DNA from: Klebsormidium nitens
Lineage: Eukaryota > Plantae > Klebsormidiophyceae
Reading direction: 5' to 3'
DNA: 64,000 bases
Assembly (NCBI GenBank): GCA_000708835.1
Contig: DF237219.1
Location: 53,307-117,306, forward strand
Shown here: positions 3,068-58,548 of the stretch, piece after piece
How the letters are laid out: each line of letters opens with the position of its first letter
Numbering within the stretch: the stretch's first letter is position 1
Notes under the pieces: model-generated
What the model saw: only the letters and a program-made list of their open reading frames with translations
Databases searched by the model: none
What the model was told of the DNA's origin: nothing
Position numbers and translations under genes: made by a program

Positions 3068-3608
3068 CCGGGTATCACACGTCAACGAACGAACAGGGAG
3101 CCCGAGTCACAACTTGTCGATTGCAGTCAAGTCGCAGTCAATTTACTGAGCTGCAAATCGTTGCAGGCATGCCTTACTTGCACGCAGAATTACATAAGGG
3201 GTCGATCAATTGGGTGTCTCTTGACACTTCGATGAAAATGACAAACGAAATCATTACATCCACCTGCGAGGTGTCTCAGCACAGGCATTGCATTGAATGG
3301 GCTTGCATGATTGACCAGATTACATGCTGAATTCTAGTAATGGTGCACTACTCAAATCGTTGTCCCTTTCCGTATATTTGTTACTAATAAGACCACGTGT
3401 CTGAGTGCGGGCAGCTGGCTGGCAACAAAAGGAATTTTGTTTCAAGGTTGGCTGAGAGTTGTCATGTAAATTACTAGTGGCACAAATATGGTTCGAATTG
3501 TCCTGCAAGTATGTACACGTATATACTAACTGGTCACCACCGGACAGAAGCGCAGCTCTCCGACCAATCGTATATGCATGCGGCCGGCTAGCTCACCCGT
3601 GTCATTAA

Positions 3609-4363
3609 GGTGGTAGGACGGTAATTCAGGTTGGATTGACCCTGGTTTACGTTCTGGTTCATAGAATGTTCAAAACTAAACCAAATCAGGTTTCGTCTTC
3701 TCCAATGGCTTCGAGACACCCTCGGGGTCCTCTCGAAGCTCCTCTAACCACCTCGAAGTAGTTTGGGTCAGTCTGAGAAACCCTGCCAACTCCAAACAAC
3801 CTGGTTCAAAGGGGTATTTCCATTGGATTTTCTGCCTGTCAACTGCCACGATAAATTTCCTTCGAACAAGAGGAAATCACCTTCGGGGCAAGCTGGGATG
3901 TCAAAAACATTTTTCCAAAAAAAATCTGACGGAAATGTGCACCGCCAGGGGGGAACATACCTGGTCAACAACCTGAGAAAAAACCATTTTGAGCATATAA
4001 GCTGGGAGTTTTGACCATTAACGGTGCACATTTTCGTCAATATTGTGATTTAACCGTTCGATAGACATCCCAGCTTGCCCCGATTCAGTTTTAGGGGGGT
4101 CAATGAGAATTCTATCATTTCGTTTTTCTGACGGCCAAGGGTTCATGTAGGGGGGTAAATGTTCAAACTTCCTCAACTTCAGACTTTCCTCGACAAGTCG
4201 TCAGTGAGTTCGAGGTGGTCCCAGAGTGCTCGAGGGGGCCTCCTTGGTCCCCCCCGAAAGATGCAAAAGACGGGACTCGATTTGACCACGTTATGACCAA
4301 GTTACGCCCCTTCAAACCCTAGAAACCCTCTTTTCTGGCTGAATTACCGTACGTCCTACCACC
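3609..4363. mobile_element. Non-autonomous DNA transposon (MITE/fold-back) with TTAA flanks, Kolobok-like termini
   Basis: TTAA at 3605-3608 and 4364-4367. TIR GGTGGTAGGACG-GTAATTCAG (3609-3629) matches CTGAATTACCGTACGTCCTACCACC (4339-4363) with a 4-nt indel. A perfect internal 19-bp inverted repeat lies at 3884-3902 / 4064-4082. No transposase ORF. Confidence 0.8.
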
Positions 4364-14197: not shown

Positions 14198-15210
14198 TCT
14201 TATCGTGGAGGGGAGGGTTTTGTGTCTAGTATCTTCTTAGAAGGTCCAGTGTCGCCGTTAGTAAGTCCTGTCGCTGCTAGTAAGTCGCGTCCAGTGTCAT
14301 GGGTTAGTCATGATCGTATCTAGACGTCCAGAAAGCACACATACAAACACAAATCAGGTTCGCCATTCGAGCCGACACTTAGAAGTGAGTCGAACATTCA
14401 AAGACGAAGTCTTCTCCATTGACATCGTGGTGTCAAGGAACAGTACGTTGCTAGCGCAGTCCGCATCCAGAATGTGGATGCTCGGAGATCGTATGACCTG
14501 TCAGAAGTTGCAAGGCGTTCATGCGGTGCATGCTTGACAAACAAACTATATGTGTGTCCAGTTTTTGCATTAGGCACATCCGTGCGTAACACCCTGCATA
14601 ATACTATATTCCCTCATGTGCAAGTCGAATCGTAGGACTTTCCGATCTGCAAGTTACTTAAGATGCGTCATCAGTGTGATCAAGAGTAATAAGATTCAAT
14701 TCTCAATGTAAATCAAGTGCTAATTGACTTAATAGCAGGTTACTGGGAGCCTGGGAGGTCAAAGAAATATTAGTTGACATTTCAAATTTATGCGTAACTA
14801 AGTCTACAGCTAGGCTTAAGTCAATTGCAGATCCAATCGATTCAAAGATCTGATACCTTTCTATGCGGCATGGCATGCAATGCAGTCCATTACTGCAGCG
14901 TAAATTGGTATTTCGCGGATCACATGCACTTCGGGCAAAAGCTGCCCCTAAGGTTCACCAGTTCACATGCATACATGTTCGTTTCAAAACCTACACCGAT
15001 TAGCGTTTTCATATACGCAGAATTAACGCTTTTATGATGCCCGTCCAATACCATGGTCAAAAGGCAGCGCAAAAATCATGAGCGATCCTCGCAATATAAT
15101 CATTATGCAAGAAATGTTGCACGACAAGGTTGTCAACCTACAGCAGTTTGCGTGAATTACCTTCTTGTCCCAGGAGCAACCTTGCATGTCGCAGTTCTTG
15201 CATACCTTAA

Positions 15211-15730
15211 AGTGGGCGTCGGGGTATAAAACCGGTATTTTCAAGACCGACCCGGAACCCGGTCGATTCGCCGTGGCTCAGGTGGCTAGCGCGCAGCCCT
15301 AAAATTGACAAGGAAGGTCCGAGGTCGTGAGTTCAAACAGCCAACTGTATCTTGTTGCCACTTTTTGCACCTTCCTTTTTGGGGCACTTGCTTATTAGGG
15401 CCTGTCAAAGAGTACACACCGGGCACCCGATCTGGCCCAAAGTTGACCATCGGACGGTCTGTATGCAATATTGAAAATACGGTGGTGATCGAAAGGCTTA
15501 AAACGCTGCAAGTTTAGATTCACCGGGCAACTATGGCTATGACGTCACCGGCCCTCCGCGGTACTCATTTGATAAGAGGTACTGTACCACTGGTACCGCG
15601 GTACATCCCAGCATGTTGAAGCGACAAATCATCATGACCGCTCATCGCGAAATGTCAGATCGACTGGATGAATGTTGGGCCGTTCGATCGGCGTTCAATC
15701 TGAAAAGGACGTGCACGTCCTAAGCCCACT
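15211..15730 (+). mobile_element. ~520-bp TTAA-flanked non-autonomous element, copy 1, carrying a tRNA-like Pol III cassette
   Basis: Perfect TTAA on both sides (15207-15210, 15731-15734). Termini AGTGGGC...GCCCACT. Homologous along its length to the inverted copy at 15746-16264. Confidence 0.8.
15267..15366 (+). ncRNA. tRNA-derived Pol III unit (degenerate, not a foldable tRNA) inside element copy 1
   Basis: TATAAAA at 15225, A-box TGGCTCAGGTGG at 15274, B-box-like GAGTTCAAAC at about 15329-15338, TTTTT at 15362-15366. Acceptor and T stems do not pair. Confidence 0.55.
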
Positions 15731-15745
15731 TTAATTAAACTTGAA

Positions 15746-16264
15746 AGTGGGCGTGGGACCCGCGGGTCCCAAATTGACCGAATCTGATCGGACGCTGCAG
15801 ATCCCATCGGCTCAATCGATTGGACCTCCATCGGACGGTATCGATGAGCTGTGACATAAGCAAGCGTCAGCGTACCGCATATATCTGGTACGGTACTTCT
15901 AGAGTTAGAGGTACCGCCAGAAAACCATGACGTCATGAAAGACTATGCCCGGTACACTGCAAATAGGGTACAACATACGCCGTCAGATGAGCCCAAGTTC
16001 TAGTGACACAATATTTGACCGTTAGATCGCGTTTCTCGGGCCAAATCACTTGCCCGGTATGCCCCCAAAAGCCTGCCTTAATAGCTTGGTGTTGCAAAAA
16101 GGAAGAAGTAAACCTCGAAAAAGTTGGGACCTCCGCGAATCGAACTCAGGACCTCGGCCGATTCAGCCGAGCTTAGGCGAGCGCGCTATCCACTTGAGCT
16201 ACTGTGACTTGGCCGACTCCCAATTCAGTCTGGCAAATAGGGGTTTTATACCCCGACGCCCACT
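15746..16264 (-). mobile_element. ~519-bp element, copy 2 (inverted, tail-to-tail with copy 1)
   Basis: Termini AGTGGGCG...CGCCCACT; flanks TGAA and (TT)TTAA. The outer end has a perfect 25-bp match (AAAGTGGGCGTCGGGGTATAAAACC) to the outer end of copy 1. Confidence 0.75.
16118..16208 (-). ncRNA. tRNA-derived Pol III unit (degenerate) inside element copy 2
   Basis: On the minus strand: TATAAAA (16250-16244), A-box TAGCTCAAGTGG, B-box GAGTTCGATTC, then TTTTT (16122-16118). The acceptor stem GTCACAG/AGGTCCC does not pair. Confidence 0.6.
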
Positions 16265-16444
16265 TTTTAAGCTCGAGTCCTGCACTCTAGCTCCGACTCT
16301 CAGTCCGATTTTGTGATGCGCGGACACGCGCGCGCTGTCGTCCGCCAAGCATGGTCCAACGCATGGAGCCTGAGGCTGAGGCTGCAGAACTTCTGCCAGA
16401 AGACGGAACCTTGATTTCGTGGCGGCCAAGCAGTGACAGCGACA

Positions 16445-19400
16445 ATGGCGACAAGCCGGCTTGCCTCTTTGGTTGGTGCAGGTGGAGCCAGCTTTGTCGT
16501 CCAATGCTGCGAGGTTGACCCCTCAGTTAGCCCTTTGTGCTCCTGCCCCCTCGCCTCACCACTGCTCGCTGCCCGGAGGGTGTCGCATTCGCAAGCGACC
16601 AGCCGGACATCGCCACCCCAATGCATCACGACGGGGAAAGTAGAGCATTCACGCGCAAGCACGAGGCGAAGAGCAGTGCGCAGGCCGGTGGTAACCTGTG
16701 CTGTTCCTGGCACCAGCCCGCCTCCATACGTAGAGAGTCCTCCCTTCACGGAAGATGCACTGGACCGGGCTGCTGCGCTGGCGCAGGCCACGCTGAGGGA
16801 AATGCTCAGCTATGTGAGTGTCACGGACCTTTGCGTCACTATAGGGATTCTGACCTATGCCACTCTTTTCTTTCCCCGGCAAACACTCTCATTCATAATC
16901 AGGAGAATCCAAGTCCAATATCGTTTTGACTGACCTTGCAACATCAGTGGCATAGTATGCCCCCAATATCCTCGCTGGAATTTACGGTCAACTGTGCTAG
17001 GCCACATCGGCCGAACTTCAGAGAGTGCTATGAAAACATTGCGGAGCCCCTCGCACTTTGCTCTAATGATGAAGTATGCAAGTACCTTGGAGTGAGGAGA
17101 ATGGAGCTTAGTGGTTCCAGGAGGCAGAGGGGGACTAAACAGCAACTGCCATCGTGGTATTACCATTAATGTGCGAATCGAGTGAGAAAGAGCTGGCCCG
17201 GCCTGAGGCGTCCCTCATGGGTGGTGTGAGTGCAGTTGGAGGATCTCGGCAACACGGGCGGCCTGGAGGAGCTGACGGTACAGCTGGCGGCCAACGCGGC
17301 CATCAGCAAGCGCATCGACAAGCTGGACGGGGCATTCATGCTGGCCATTGACACCATGCTCATGCAGGCAGAGAGGAACAATGATCCCCAGGTGGGTAAA
17401 AGGCAGCGGGGCAGGCTCAGGGACAGGGCAAGGCGACCTGTATGGTTCGGCAGAGCGGGAAGACCGAAAGCATCTCCAACAAACTGACCAATGAACAGTT
17501 GATACATTGGCCTGCGCCAATCATACTTTCCTAGCGATTCAAACGCAAGCTCAGTGGTAAGCATATGGACCATGTTGGATGGTCATCTGTGGCCTCTCTG
17601 TCCCACTCACACCGTTTTGTCGGTGGTTGTGCAGTCGGTGGCCATTCTCCTGATTGTGAAGCAGGAGGTCCTGGCAGCGCTGGCCAAGAGCTTCCCGCCC
17701 AATGTGAGCGGATCATTCAAATGATGCTTAGGTGACCGATGCCTTTAAAGGCAGTGCGGCTGGACAGAACAAAGACAAATTCCTTAGAAGAGCCGATTCT
17801 CGTTTGCAGCTGTTAGCCTGCTGAAGCTGTGCCATGGTTTTCTCAAACCACCAGAAAGAGATAGTCGTTATTGTCTTGGAATTTACTTCGGCTATTCGTG
17901 AGTATCTGAGAGACGGACTCCACAAGCCGTTCGTGGCAAGCCATTGTAGTGCTGCTCACACTCTCCCCCTTCTCTGTGTCCTTGTGGTGTGCAGGTGCAG
18001 GTGTTGGAGCTGCTGACGAGGGTGCCCCTCAAGGAGGTGCGCAAGGACCTCATCTGCCTGGCCGCGGCTGGAGGGGGCCAATACACCGGGGGGGAGTACG
18101 AGACACGGGAGGACAAGCTGCTGGTGCCCGCAGCAAGGATTGAAAACGTGCTGCGGCAAACGGACGACATGGTCTACGTGAGTTAATGGCGCTGCTGGCT
18201 GAAGACGTTGTGTGTGCCGCCATTCGCTGGTAGATTGAGCCATAGAGGTTCGAAGCCCTGTTCGTTTGACTGCTGTGTCTTTTAGACTGGCAAGACGTTG
18301 GGTCGATAACCTGTAAGTTCACAGTGCATTTAATCGGACGCGGTCATGGCATACCTATTCAGCCATCTCACATCGAGAAACAGTCCGAGCCCGGGAGGCT
18401 GTCACCACGATAGGGAAGGCGGTTTGAGAGCAATCACGTGGACTCCTCCCCTCGGAACACCTGAAGCGTTCAAAGCCTGCGCTGATGAAGTTCTATGGTC
18501 TCCCATGATCCTCGTTTGTGATCGGGCTGTCCATAACCGTATGCTGTGAGCGTTTGCGCGCAGGACATGGAGGAGCGCGCGCAGGTGGCGGATCGGCGGC
18601 TGCTGGCGCGGCTGGTGCTTATCCGGGAGGAGCTGCGCGCCATGATGGCAGGGGGGATCCACGACCCGCGCGCCAACACGCGCGTGCTCGGGAATCTGCC
18701 GCAGAAAGAGGTGCAGGCCCGCGCAGCCGTGTTTATGAGAAGCCGCCGTTCTGACGGAGCTCGAAGCTGAAAATACGAGTGTTGAGTTTTCGATTTGGAC
18801 TGCGTGTTCCCTCTCGATTCAAGCGTCTTTGCCCCGTGGTGATAGAACTATGCCACAGGGACAACGATGCAGGGAAGGACCAACCTTTCGATGTCCGGAG
18901 ATCATTGAGTTCTGCCGAAGTATTTAGTCAAGTGTACGAAGATCTTCCGTGCAGTGGCTTCTATTCGACAGGTTTCGCTAATGCCTCACACATAGCTCAC
19001 AAGCTCTGGCTTCGCCTCCCCCAGGTAGAGTTTCTGAGTGCGTTGGCGGCGATGCGGCCCGGGGAGCAGATGTCGGCGCGCATCGCCAAGGTGCTGGCGG
19101 GGCAGGACGAGGGCGCGGACAAGGTGACCAAGTTTGTCCCGCAGGCGGAGCGCGCCGCGGCCGAGTACGACATCGACGAGGTGCGCACGCGGGGGCTGGA
19201 CGACGAGGAGCTGGCGGAGGAGGACCACGCGCTGCGCATGCGCATTGCGGGGGAGTCGGGGGAGACGCGCGACGGGCAAGTGACGACCACGCTGCCGGTG
19301 CGGCCGGGGCAGCTGCTGGAGACGCTAACCAAGCTGACGGGGAGCGCGCTGAGCGGGTATACGGCAGGGGGCGACGCGGGGCTGCTCATGCAGATGCGCC

Positions 19401-19927
19401 ATGTGAGGGGAGGCCCGCACAGGCCGCGTGACTCCGTCCCAACAGAACCACGAGCCTACCGGCTTGTATGGCTCATGGTCTAAATTGTCGGTCGTTTCAA
19501 TGACTTTCCTGTGAGCTTGGGCTTGTTCGAGAAACCAATTCTGGAGCTTCTGCCGTGCGTTGGTGGCTCTGCTTTTGCAATACAACGGTGTCGACTGCCT
19601 ATATTCCAAGCCCCTGTCACGAAGCTGACAGAAGTGCCAGACATGCTTCACTTGCGCGATGAAGAAGAAAGACCCGTCGGGTGTGCTGCAACGCCAGCTT
19701 TAAGCCCGTGCATTGGCGCGTATGGCGGGCTGCTGCGAGGATTCCTGGTTTAAAGGAGTGCCCTCTGGTTTGCTGTGGATCCCTTTGCGGGCAGCCTGGA
19801 GCAGCGGAGACACTTGAATGCGAGAGACCTTGTTGTTGCATTGCAGGTGCGGAAGGTGTGCTTGGAAGAGCTGGAGGATCTGGCAGGCTGGGGGAAGTTC
19901 GAAGATGCAAGCGAGTATCGGCCATGA
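16445..19927 (+). CDS. PRDA1: PEP-RELATED DEVELOPMENT ARRESTED 1 homologue (plastid nucleoid protein), about 7 exons
   Basis: Transit-peptide-like N-terminus. Motifs VQLAANAAISKRIDKLDGAFMLAIDTM, DRRLLARLVLIREE, GQDEGAD and LPVRPGQLLETLTK match my recollection of Arabidopsis PRDA1 (VELAAQGVIGKRVDEMESGFMMALDYM, DRKLLARLVLIREE, GKDEGAD, LPVRPGMFLETVTK). Confidence 0.85.
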
Positions 19928-57417: not shown

Positions 57418-58438
57418 GCCCCCGGCCCTTCCTGTACAGTGGCAACCGCAGCCGGTATGAAGTGGGCGGGGGGGTCCAGCAGGGCGGGCAGGCTCCGCAG
57501 GGGTGACTGTTGCAGGAGAGCCTACGGTGGACCAGTGACCGACCATGTCATGCTGCTTGAGAAGGAGCCATCGTTTCGAGCAGCCATGACCTCCTTAGTT
57601 TCACCGGTAGATTAGTTAAAACGGTCCGCTCGTTCTGATCAAGTGACTTGATCAGGCAGCTTTGCATAGGAAGCCAAGCTGGAGTGCGCCTCGTACGTGG
57701 CACGCTAGTCATGCCAGACTTGCTTCAGGTTAGACACTGGTCGTCTGCGCAATAGACAGGCTGCTGCCAAGGTTTGTTGACCGCAAAGCTTGTCTGCATC
57801 GGCCATGCGACGCAAGGATTGACAGATTGCTTTCAGACGTGCCATGTGCTTTGAAACCAGCAGTGTCGCCGCAATATGCTTGATTGGGTGTCATGCAAGC
57901 TGTTTAACGAACAAATCAGCATCTGCGTATGTCCGATCAATCATGCCAAGGCACATGCCAATTGTGTAGACTTCCCTTGATGTCGGCTGCGATCTGCCGT
58001 GCGTCGGACCTGCAGGTGGGCCGCTCGTGCTTATGCTCTGCTTCGAAAATCCACGGTTGAGAATGAATCAGTAGGCCAGATCGTACCATTAACCAGCGAT
58101 CTCTCGTGAGGATCTGCAGACTGCAAGGGGTATGCTACCTAGGGCAAGAGCAAGGAATTCTGGAGCTGCGCCCAAGCATGCAGAATGTAGATCGATACGG
58201 AGTCTGCTTTCATCTGTTGGTTGCAACAATGTTCCAATGAGTGATCTGGAAGAGATTGCGATTCGAACGATCACGCAGACTATCCTTGCCTGTGTAATTT
58301 TCGCCAGTGCCTATTTTCCGGTCCACCTAGCTTCGGCCGATTGCAATAAGCAAACCGCTGGGTTAGAAGATGCGCTTGTGCGCATGAGGCCTGAAGCTTC
58401 GGGCCCATGGATTGGCTAGAAAGGTATTGACCACGACC

Positions 58439-58548
58439 NNNNNNNNNNNNNNNNNNNNNNNNNNNNNNNNNNNNNNNNNNNNNNNNNNNNNNNNNNNNNN
58501 NNNNNNNNNNNNNNNNNNNNNNNNNNNNNNNNNNNNNNNNNNNNNNNN
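58439..58548. other. Assembly gap (110 N)
   Basis: Run of N; the two flanks repeat each other (see rejected list). Confidence 0.99.

Follow-up and report, generated by a model that had tools for sequence, protein, structure and literature searches.

How do two related non-coding units, each laid out like a tRNA gene behind one end, come to lie tail to tail between two genes of the alga Klebsormidium nitens? The question is raised by the intergenic stretch 15207-16270 of a window of 64,000 nt (assembly GCA_000708835.1, contig DF237219.1, 53,307-117,306, forward strand). The window is the whole stretch of DNA that was analysed, and coordinates are positions in it. The intergenic stretch has 48% GC, compared with 55-65% in neighbouring 2-kb bins, and contains two inverted units of ~520 bp, termed copy 1 and copy 2 (Table 1). 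We favour, with somewhat better than even confidence, the reading that they are copies of a mobile element with terminal inverted repeats (TIRs) that carries a captured tRNA gene. The evidence for this reading is given first, followed by the alternatives and by a comparison with known systems.

The two units and their ends

Each unit has its own TIR, of 16 nt at 88% identity in copy 1 and 14 nt at 93% in copy 2, and the homology between the copies stops at the unit ends, giving sharp boundaries. The 9-mer AAAGTGGGC is found at four sites in the window (0.86 expected), and all four are unit ends. Only short open reading frames (ORFs) occur in the units, none of them common to both copies.

Similarity between the copies falls off inwards from the left end, which is the outer end of the pair and is followed by the tRNA-like part, or head. 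Identity is complete over the first 25 nt (AAAGTGGGCGTCGGGGTATAAAACC), drops to 74% over the following ~100 nt (BLAST, head of ~126 nt, E 7e-16) and to about 55-59% over the remaining ~360 nt, the body. The global alignment of the bodies scores 16, where dinucleotide shuffles give 2.1 +/- 1.3 (z 10); alignments to the opposite strand or to random window segments score at background level. With a score so far above shuffles, the bodies are truly homologous despite their weak similarity. Short blocks of 7-9 nt match exactly between the two bodies and follow one another in the same order (ACCGGGCA twice, ATGACGTCA, GCGGTAC twice), and exact runs of at least 7 nt number seven where permutation gives 3.4 (P 0.02). 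The first-pass annotation of this DNA had described two inverted ~520-bp units with identical outer 25 bp and patchily similar bodies that share short blocks. All of these features are present, and the blocks are colinear in the two copies.

Conservation is much higher at both ends than inside the units. The left ends agree at 35 of 40 positions, including the perfect run of 25 nt. Such a run is expected only 0.0006-0.07 times at 60-74% identity, an improbability which argues that the ends are under a constraint absent from the interior. At the right ends the terminal 9-11 nt are common to the copies, and 18 of the last 24 nt are identical (counted from the alignment). The right end of each copy also contains a perfect palindrome, 14 nt long in copy 1 and 16 nt in copy 2. 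The two occupy homologous positions, and compensatory changes account for the difference in their sequences. Perfect palindromes of these lengths number nine (14 nt) and five (16 nt) in the whole window.

TTAA is rare in the window (100 sites in 64 kb). It directly flanks copy 1 on both sides, and at the tail a second TTAA follows at once. The termini of copy 2 are directly flanked by TGAA and TTTT; perfect TTAA lies 7 nt and 2 nt away from the ends, on the outer side. The TTAA flanks reported in the first-pass annotation are therefore perfect for copy 1 and displaced, by 2 and 7 nt, for copy 2. Excision of both copies on paper would leave ~...GCATACC TTAA TTAA GCTCGAG..., a residue that suggests two insertions into adjacent TTAA sites.

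Within the bodies, a palindrome of the cAMP response element (CRE)/bZIP type is found at homologous positions, as a perfect 12-nt CATGACGTCATG in copy 2 (15928-15939) and as ATGACGTCA in copy 1. Blocks with a GTAC core (the two GCGGTAC) lie near it. Both the palindrome and these blocks could be protein-binding sites.

The tRNA-gene-derived head

By sequence match, the head of each unit has the full layout of a tRNA gene: an upstream TATA box, an A box, a B box, an intron-sized insert and runs of five T (T5). Plant rules for RNA polymerase III (Pol III) promoters and terminators were applied to the heads as published (PMC13578239). In both copies the first base of TATAAAA lies 42 nt ahead of the tRNA-like +1, and the interval is free of indels. 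C61 is missing from copy 1's B box. From T8 to T54 the heads measure 57-58 nt, compared with 55 nt in the natural gene, which has a ~10-nt intron, and about 45-46 nt without an intron; the excess corresponds to an insert of about 12-13 nt.

Neither head encodes a recognizable tRNA. ARAGORN finds none, nor at E<=10 does the Rfam tRNA model, whereas a natural intron-bearing tRNA-Met gene, used as a control, scores 53.9 bits with the same model. The heads match no Rfam family. They have no common RNA fold, and their folding is no more stable than that of shuffled sequences (z +1.7 and -0.15).

Most of the earlier description of the heads stands. It had proposed TATAAAA 42 nt before the +1, an A box, a B box or B-box-like block and a T5 in both copies, the promoter geometry of a captured precursor tRNA gene, and a destroyed cloverleaf. 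The signals are located in both copies, colinear with natural tRNA genes and in native spacing, and the blank tRNA searches agree with the loss of the cloverleaf. The insert at the anticodon is also present, at about 12-13 nt and not the 14-15 nt first given.

Comparator tRNA genes were retrieved from metagenomes with a loose pattern of the A-side and B-side blocks. The pattern returned five contigs (L001-L005), all with genuine intron-bearing tRNA genes and none a member of the element family. The genes on L001-L004 are tRNA-Arg(TCG) (ARAGORN run on L001 only) and that on L005 is tRNA-Met(CAT). L005 (JGI contig Ga0164242_10010240, GC 55%), which we take to be green-alga or plant-like nuclear DNA, carries this gene at 3235-3317 (-) and, some 260 bp away, a tRNA-Pro(TGG) gene at 3578-3650 (-).

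Both heads are colinear with the comparator genes from the 5' acceptor position through the T run. Their identity to the tRNA-Met(CAT) gene of L005 is 67-70% (z 6.8-9.0; E 5e-8 in an nhmmer search with the element profile), figures that are inflated since the comparators were found with a pattern drawn from the heads. Colinearity also extends to features outside the search pattern, namely the A box, the 3' acceptor (GGTCCCA versus GGTTCCA) and the terminator position of copy 2. The resemblance to tRNA-Met noted at first pass is thus real and colinear, and it is not exclusive, tRNA-Arg being nearly as close to the heads. By sequence, an elongator tRNA-Met gene is our best guess for the donor. 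About 34% of nuclear tRNA genes in K. nitens are intron-bearing (PMC13578239). The heads are 66% identical to each other, so that with two copies, each as near to a foreign tRNA-Met as to the other, conservation of the boxes is inseparable from that of the universal tRNA-gene core.

Origin of the pair

Sharp boundaries, a separate TIR in each unit, constrained and asymmetric ends and TTAA flanks together make up the anatomy of a non-autonomous cut-and-paste element. The two copies would be anciently diverged members of one such ~520-bp non-coding element, or members of two of its subfamilies, and the pair would have inserted at a probable TTAATTAA site between two genes. A copy would be bounded by asymmetric ends of ~25 bp whose outer 11-14 nt form the TIR (AAAGTGGGCKT...), with a GC-rich palindrome added at the right. 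These ends would be recognised by a TTAA-specific DDE transposase, most likely of Kolobok type, supplied in trans. Directly behind the left repeat, a genomic tRNA gene would have been captured from TATA box to T-run terminator, intron-sized insert included. Homology between the copies takes in the TATA box, the 14-16 nt upstream of this box and the insert, which indicates that the tRNA unit was duplicated at the level of genomic DNA, without passing through a Pol III transcript.

Given a mobile TIR element, TTAA targeting of Kolobok type is probable, well short of certain. Kolobok elements are marked by a TTAA target duplication and 5'-RR...YY-3' termini (PMC9587614, PMC6004289). The Kolobok assignment proposed at first pass agrees with this signature in the AG...CT termini and in the TTAA of copy 1, and it depends on one perfect TTAA pair.

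As for the captured unit, the default expectation is a decaying passenger in which the box-like blocks are the slowest-lost parts. From its signals, the unit may still bind TFIIIC or yield an RNA of ~100 nt. A stronger version holds that the Pol III unit has been kept working in a cut-and-paste lineage, each insertion acting as a mobile tRNA gene (tDNA) that makes a ~100-nt RNA or forms a TFIIIC boundary, with the boxes maintained and the folding lost; we consider this improbable.

Further copies and an autonomous partner were sought in several ways. BLASTN (word size 7) and nhmmer with a profile of both copies found no third copy or fragment in the window. A one-mismatch TIR match lies at 57460, in unrelated GC-rich sequence. 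A 21-23-nt left-end pattern had no match in viral contigs, JGI metagenomes or GTDB genomes, collections without the K. nitens genome. At the ORF level, none of eight element ORFs was present on exact look-up in the ORF collection, and a word search yielded no candidate for the 88-aa head ORF. A full HMMER search returned a single weak match, P0003 (422 aa, E 5e-7), to the antisense translation of the tRNA-like head only. P0003 was rejected as a relative of the element: it is the product of a tandem-repeat ORF with five repeats of ~77 aa and matches the tRNA-antisense part alone. The ORF may run across tandemly arrayed tRNA-derived repeats in another organism. By inspection, with ORFs not scanned against Pfam, the window has no transposase-like ORF of at least 220 aa.

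Several points weigh against a mobile TIR element. Copy 2 has no TTAA directly at its termini. The TTAA of copy 1 is palindromic and, with a single clean copy, cannot be separated from a TIR that is 4 nt longer; copy 1 is likewise compatible with a TA duplication and an extended TIR. The two known copies are adjacent, with no third in 64 kb, and the viral, JGI metagenome, prokaryote and ORF-level searches are blank. Neither a transposase nor an empty site nor a polymorphism was seen. Finally, deep divergence of the bodies (about 55-59% identity) between intact ends could reflect selection at the locus and not constraint by a transposase.

The alternative that survives best, which we nevertheless consider unlikely, is a one-off local inverted duplication of a tRNA-pseudogene segment, without mobility, through fold-back or template switching at the right-end palindrome and subsequent decay. 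It accounts for units that are adjacent, inverted and 11 nt apart with a palindrome at their junction, and for the lack of any other copy in the window or in the viral, metagenome, prokaryote and ORF-level searches. Fold-back, however, does not predict that the outer boundary should repeat the motif of the inner end, with each half having its own TIR. TTAA on each side of copy 1 also counts against it. Had decay been neutral down to about 55-59% identity, the 25-nt left ends and the perfect right-end palindromes should have worn away as well. If the pair did arise in this way, it would be a decayed repeat of an ordinary kind and matter little.

Selection at the locus itself is a less probable explanation again. 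The pair would then be a module of convergent Pol III small-RNA genes, or a tDNA/TFIIIC boundary combined with a transcription-factor platform at the downstream promoter, and the terminal repeats and body blocks (CRE-like TGACGTCA, GTAC cores) would be protein-binding sites. This would suit the patchy conservation, with its excess of exact body runs, the TATA box, A box, B box and T runs kept at native spacing without indels, and the position of copy 2, whose end lies about 175 bp from the downstream ATG (16445). The heads, on the other hand, share no RNA structure, do not fold with unusual stability and match no Rfam family. The B box of copy 1 is without C61, and the boxes themselves would be shared by any two tRNA-derived sequences.

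An ordinary tRNA-derived short interspersed element (SINE), copied from its Pol III transcript by the reverse transcriptase of a long interspersed element (LINE), would explain the A box and B box of the 5' head and is hardly credible here: the sequence common to both copies includes the TATA box and a further 14-16 nt upstream, beyond the reach of a Pol III transcript, the T5 runs ~100 nt into the unit would stop a transcript long before the 3' end, and that end is a palindrome followed by GCCCACT, with TIRs present and no A-rich or simple-repeat tail. A SINE origin is excluded for these copies because their homology extends upstream of any Pol III start.

The head end of copy 2 faces the downstream gene (~175 bp to its ATG at 16445), which had been labelled PRDA1. 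The label was not confirmed: with exons searched one by one, the gene has no match to a Pfam family, a solved structure or the Atlas. No relatives were found for its first exon. Its exon ORF 18779-19480 (+) has two Logan relatives, P0001 (96% identity, on a contig of 64,018 nt) and P0002 (72%), so that this locus is covered in existing assemblies of related algae. In the same intergenic region as the units, inverted arms of 19 nt (14644-14662 and 14815-14833) are 89% complementary, lie 152 nt apart and each contain CTTAAG, and may bound a separate miniature inverted-repeat transposable element (MITE) of ~190 bp. A run of 110 N at 58439-58548 is an assembly gap.

Table 1. Positions of the sequence features in and around the two units
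Feature	Position	Strand	Remarks
TTAA flank at head of copy 1	15207-15210	.	Candidate target-site duplication, directly outside terminus
Left-end block, 25 nt	15209-15233	+	TIR plus TATAAAACC; exact identity, equals reverse complement of 16242-16266
Copy 1 of ~520-bp element	15211-15730	+	Termini AGTGGGC...GCCCACT; own TIR; full-length homology with copy 2
TATAAAA, copy 1	15225-15231	+	By sequence; starts (15225) 42 nt before tRNA-like +1 (15267)
tRNA-gene-derived segment, copy 1	15267-15350	+	A-box-like 15274-15285, anticodon insert, B-box-like 15329-15339; without cloverleaf
T5 runs, copy 1	15362-15380	+	By sequence; 15362-15366 and 15376-15380, the second in conserved block CTTCCTTTTTG
Body blocks, copy 1	15418-15604	+	ACCGGGCA 15418-15425 and 15522-15529; ATGACGTCA 15539-15547; GCGGTAC 15558-15564 and 15598-15604; common to copy 2
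Right-end palindrome, copy 1	15707-15720	+	Perfect, 14 nt; hairpin -5.4 kcal/mol as DNA
TTAA flank at tail of copy 1	15731-15734	.	Directly outside terminus; second TTAA next, 15735-15738
Spacer between copies, 11 nt	15735-15745	.	Homologous to neither copy
Copy 2 of ~520-bp element	15746-16264	-	Tail to tail with copy 1; own TIR; full-length homology with copy 1
Right-end palindrome, copy 2	15755-15770	-	Perfect, 16 nt; position homologous to 15707-15720
T5 runs, copy 2	16096-16122	-	By sequence; 16118-16122 (native tRNA terminator position) and 16096-16100 (conserved block)
tRNA-gene-derived segment, copy 2	16125-16208	-	A-box-like 16190-16201, hairpin insert, B-box-like 16137-16147; without cloverleaf
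TATAAAA, copy 2	16244-16250	-	By sequence; starts (16250) 42 nt before tRNA-like +1 (16208)
TTAA beside head of copy 2	16267-16270	.	Two extra A/T between TTAA and AG terminus

Comparison with known systems

Helitron termini are 5'-TC and 3'-CTRR without TIRs. The K. nitens units resemble Helitron 3' ends in having a GC-rich palindrome a few nucleotides before the 3' terminus; their termini are AG...CT with TIRs, and Helitron was rejected. The ends of piggyBac elements, as the first-pass annotation stated, are CC...GG and not AG...CT, and piggyBac was rejected likewise. Kolobok termini (RR...YY) differ from those of piggyBac (PMC9587614). Dada transposons are also DNA transposons physically tied to tRNA gene sequence. 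They insert inside intact tRNA or small nuclear RNA genes with duplications of 6-7 bp, and the U6 and U1 families have no TIRs (PMC3706591). Dada was rejected since the tRNA-like unit here is internal, colinear cargo and not the insertion target.

The closest likeness in the element ends is to the non-autonomous Kolobok elements, such as the T2-MITEs of Xenopus (e.g. Xmix). Like these, the K. nitens units are short and non-coding, with TIRs, AG...CT termini and, for copy 1, flanking TTAA. AG opens the TIRs of Xenopus Kolobok elements, and in T2-MITEs TTAA is followed by AGGRR (PMC6004289, PMC9587614). The K. nitens terminal sequence AGTGGGCG, in contrast, is not the T2 motif, and the TTAA of copy 2 is displaced. 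Unlike Kolobok elements as described, the units have a complete tRNA-gene-derived unit of Pol III type directly behind the left TIR. Small size (~520 bp), absence of coding sequence, TIRs and sharp boundaries are shared with MITEs in general. MITE families have multiple dispersed copies in a genome; two adjacent copies are known here in 64 kb.

Compared with natural intron-bearing tRNA genes, here the tRNA-Met(CAT) gene of L005, the heads keep in order a TATA-like element, the A box, the D arm (TAGCGCGC) and the anticodon insert, and then the T-arm half GAGGTC-GTGAGTTC and a T-run terminator. They differ in that their acceptor, anticodon and T stems no longer pair.

With tRNA-derived SINEs the units have in common 5' blocks that resemble an A box and a B box and go back to a tRNA gene, with tRNA folding lost. 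They are set apart by the inclusion of TATA and TIR upstream, by the intron-sized insert and internal T5, and by TIRs in place of a 3' tail. Pol III heads have been treated as a mark that distinguishes SINEs from MITEs (PMC3845634), and our literature searches brought up no TIR element that has a Pol III head of tRNA type. Should further copies prove to keep the Pol III signals, the K. nitens element would be a DNA transposon that spreads tRNA-type promoters and TFIIIC sites, as is known for retroposed SINEs, and would offer a simple system for studying a possible role of mobile tDNAs in shaping the gene boundaries of an early-diverging streptophyte.

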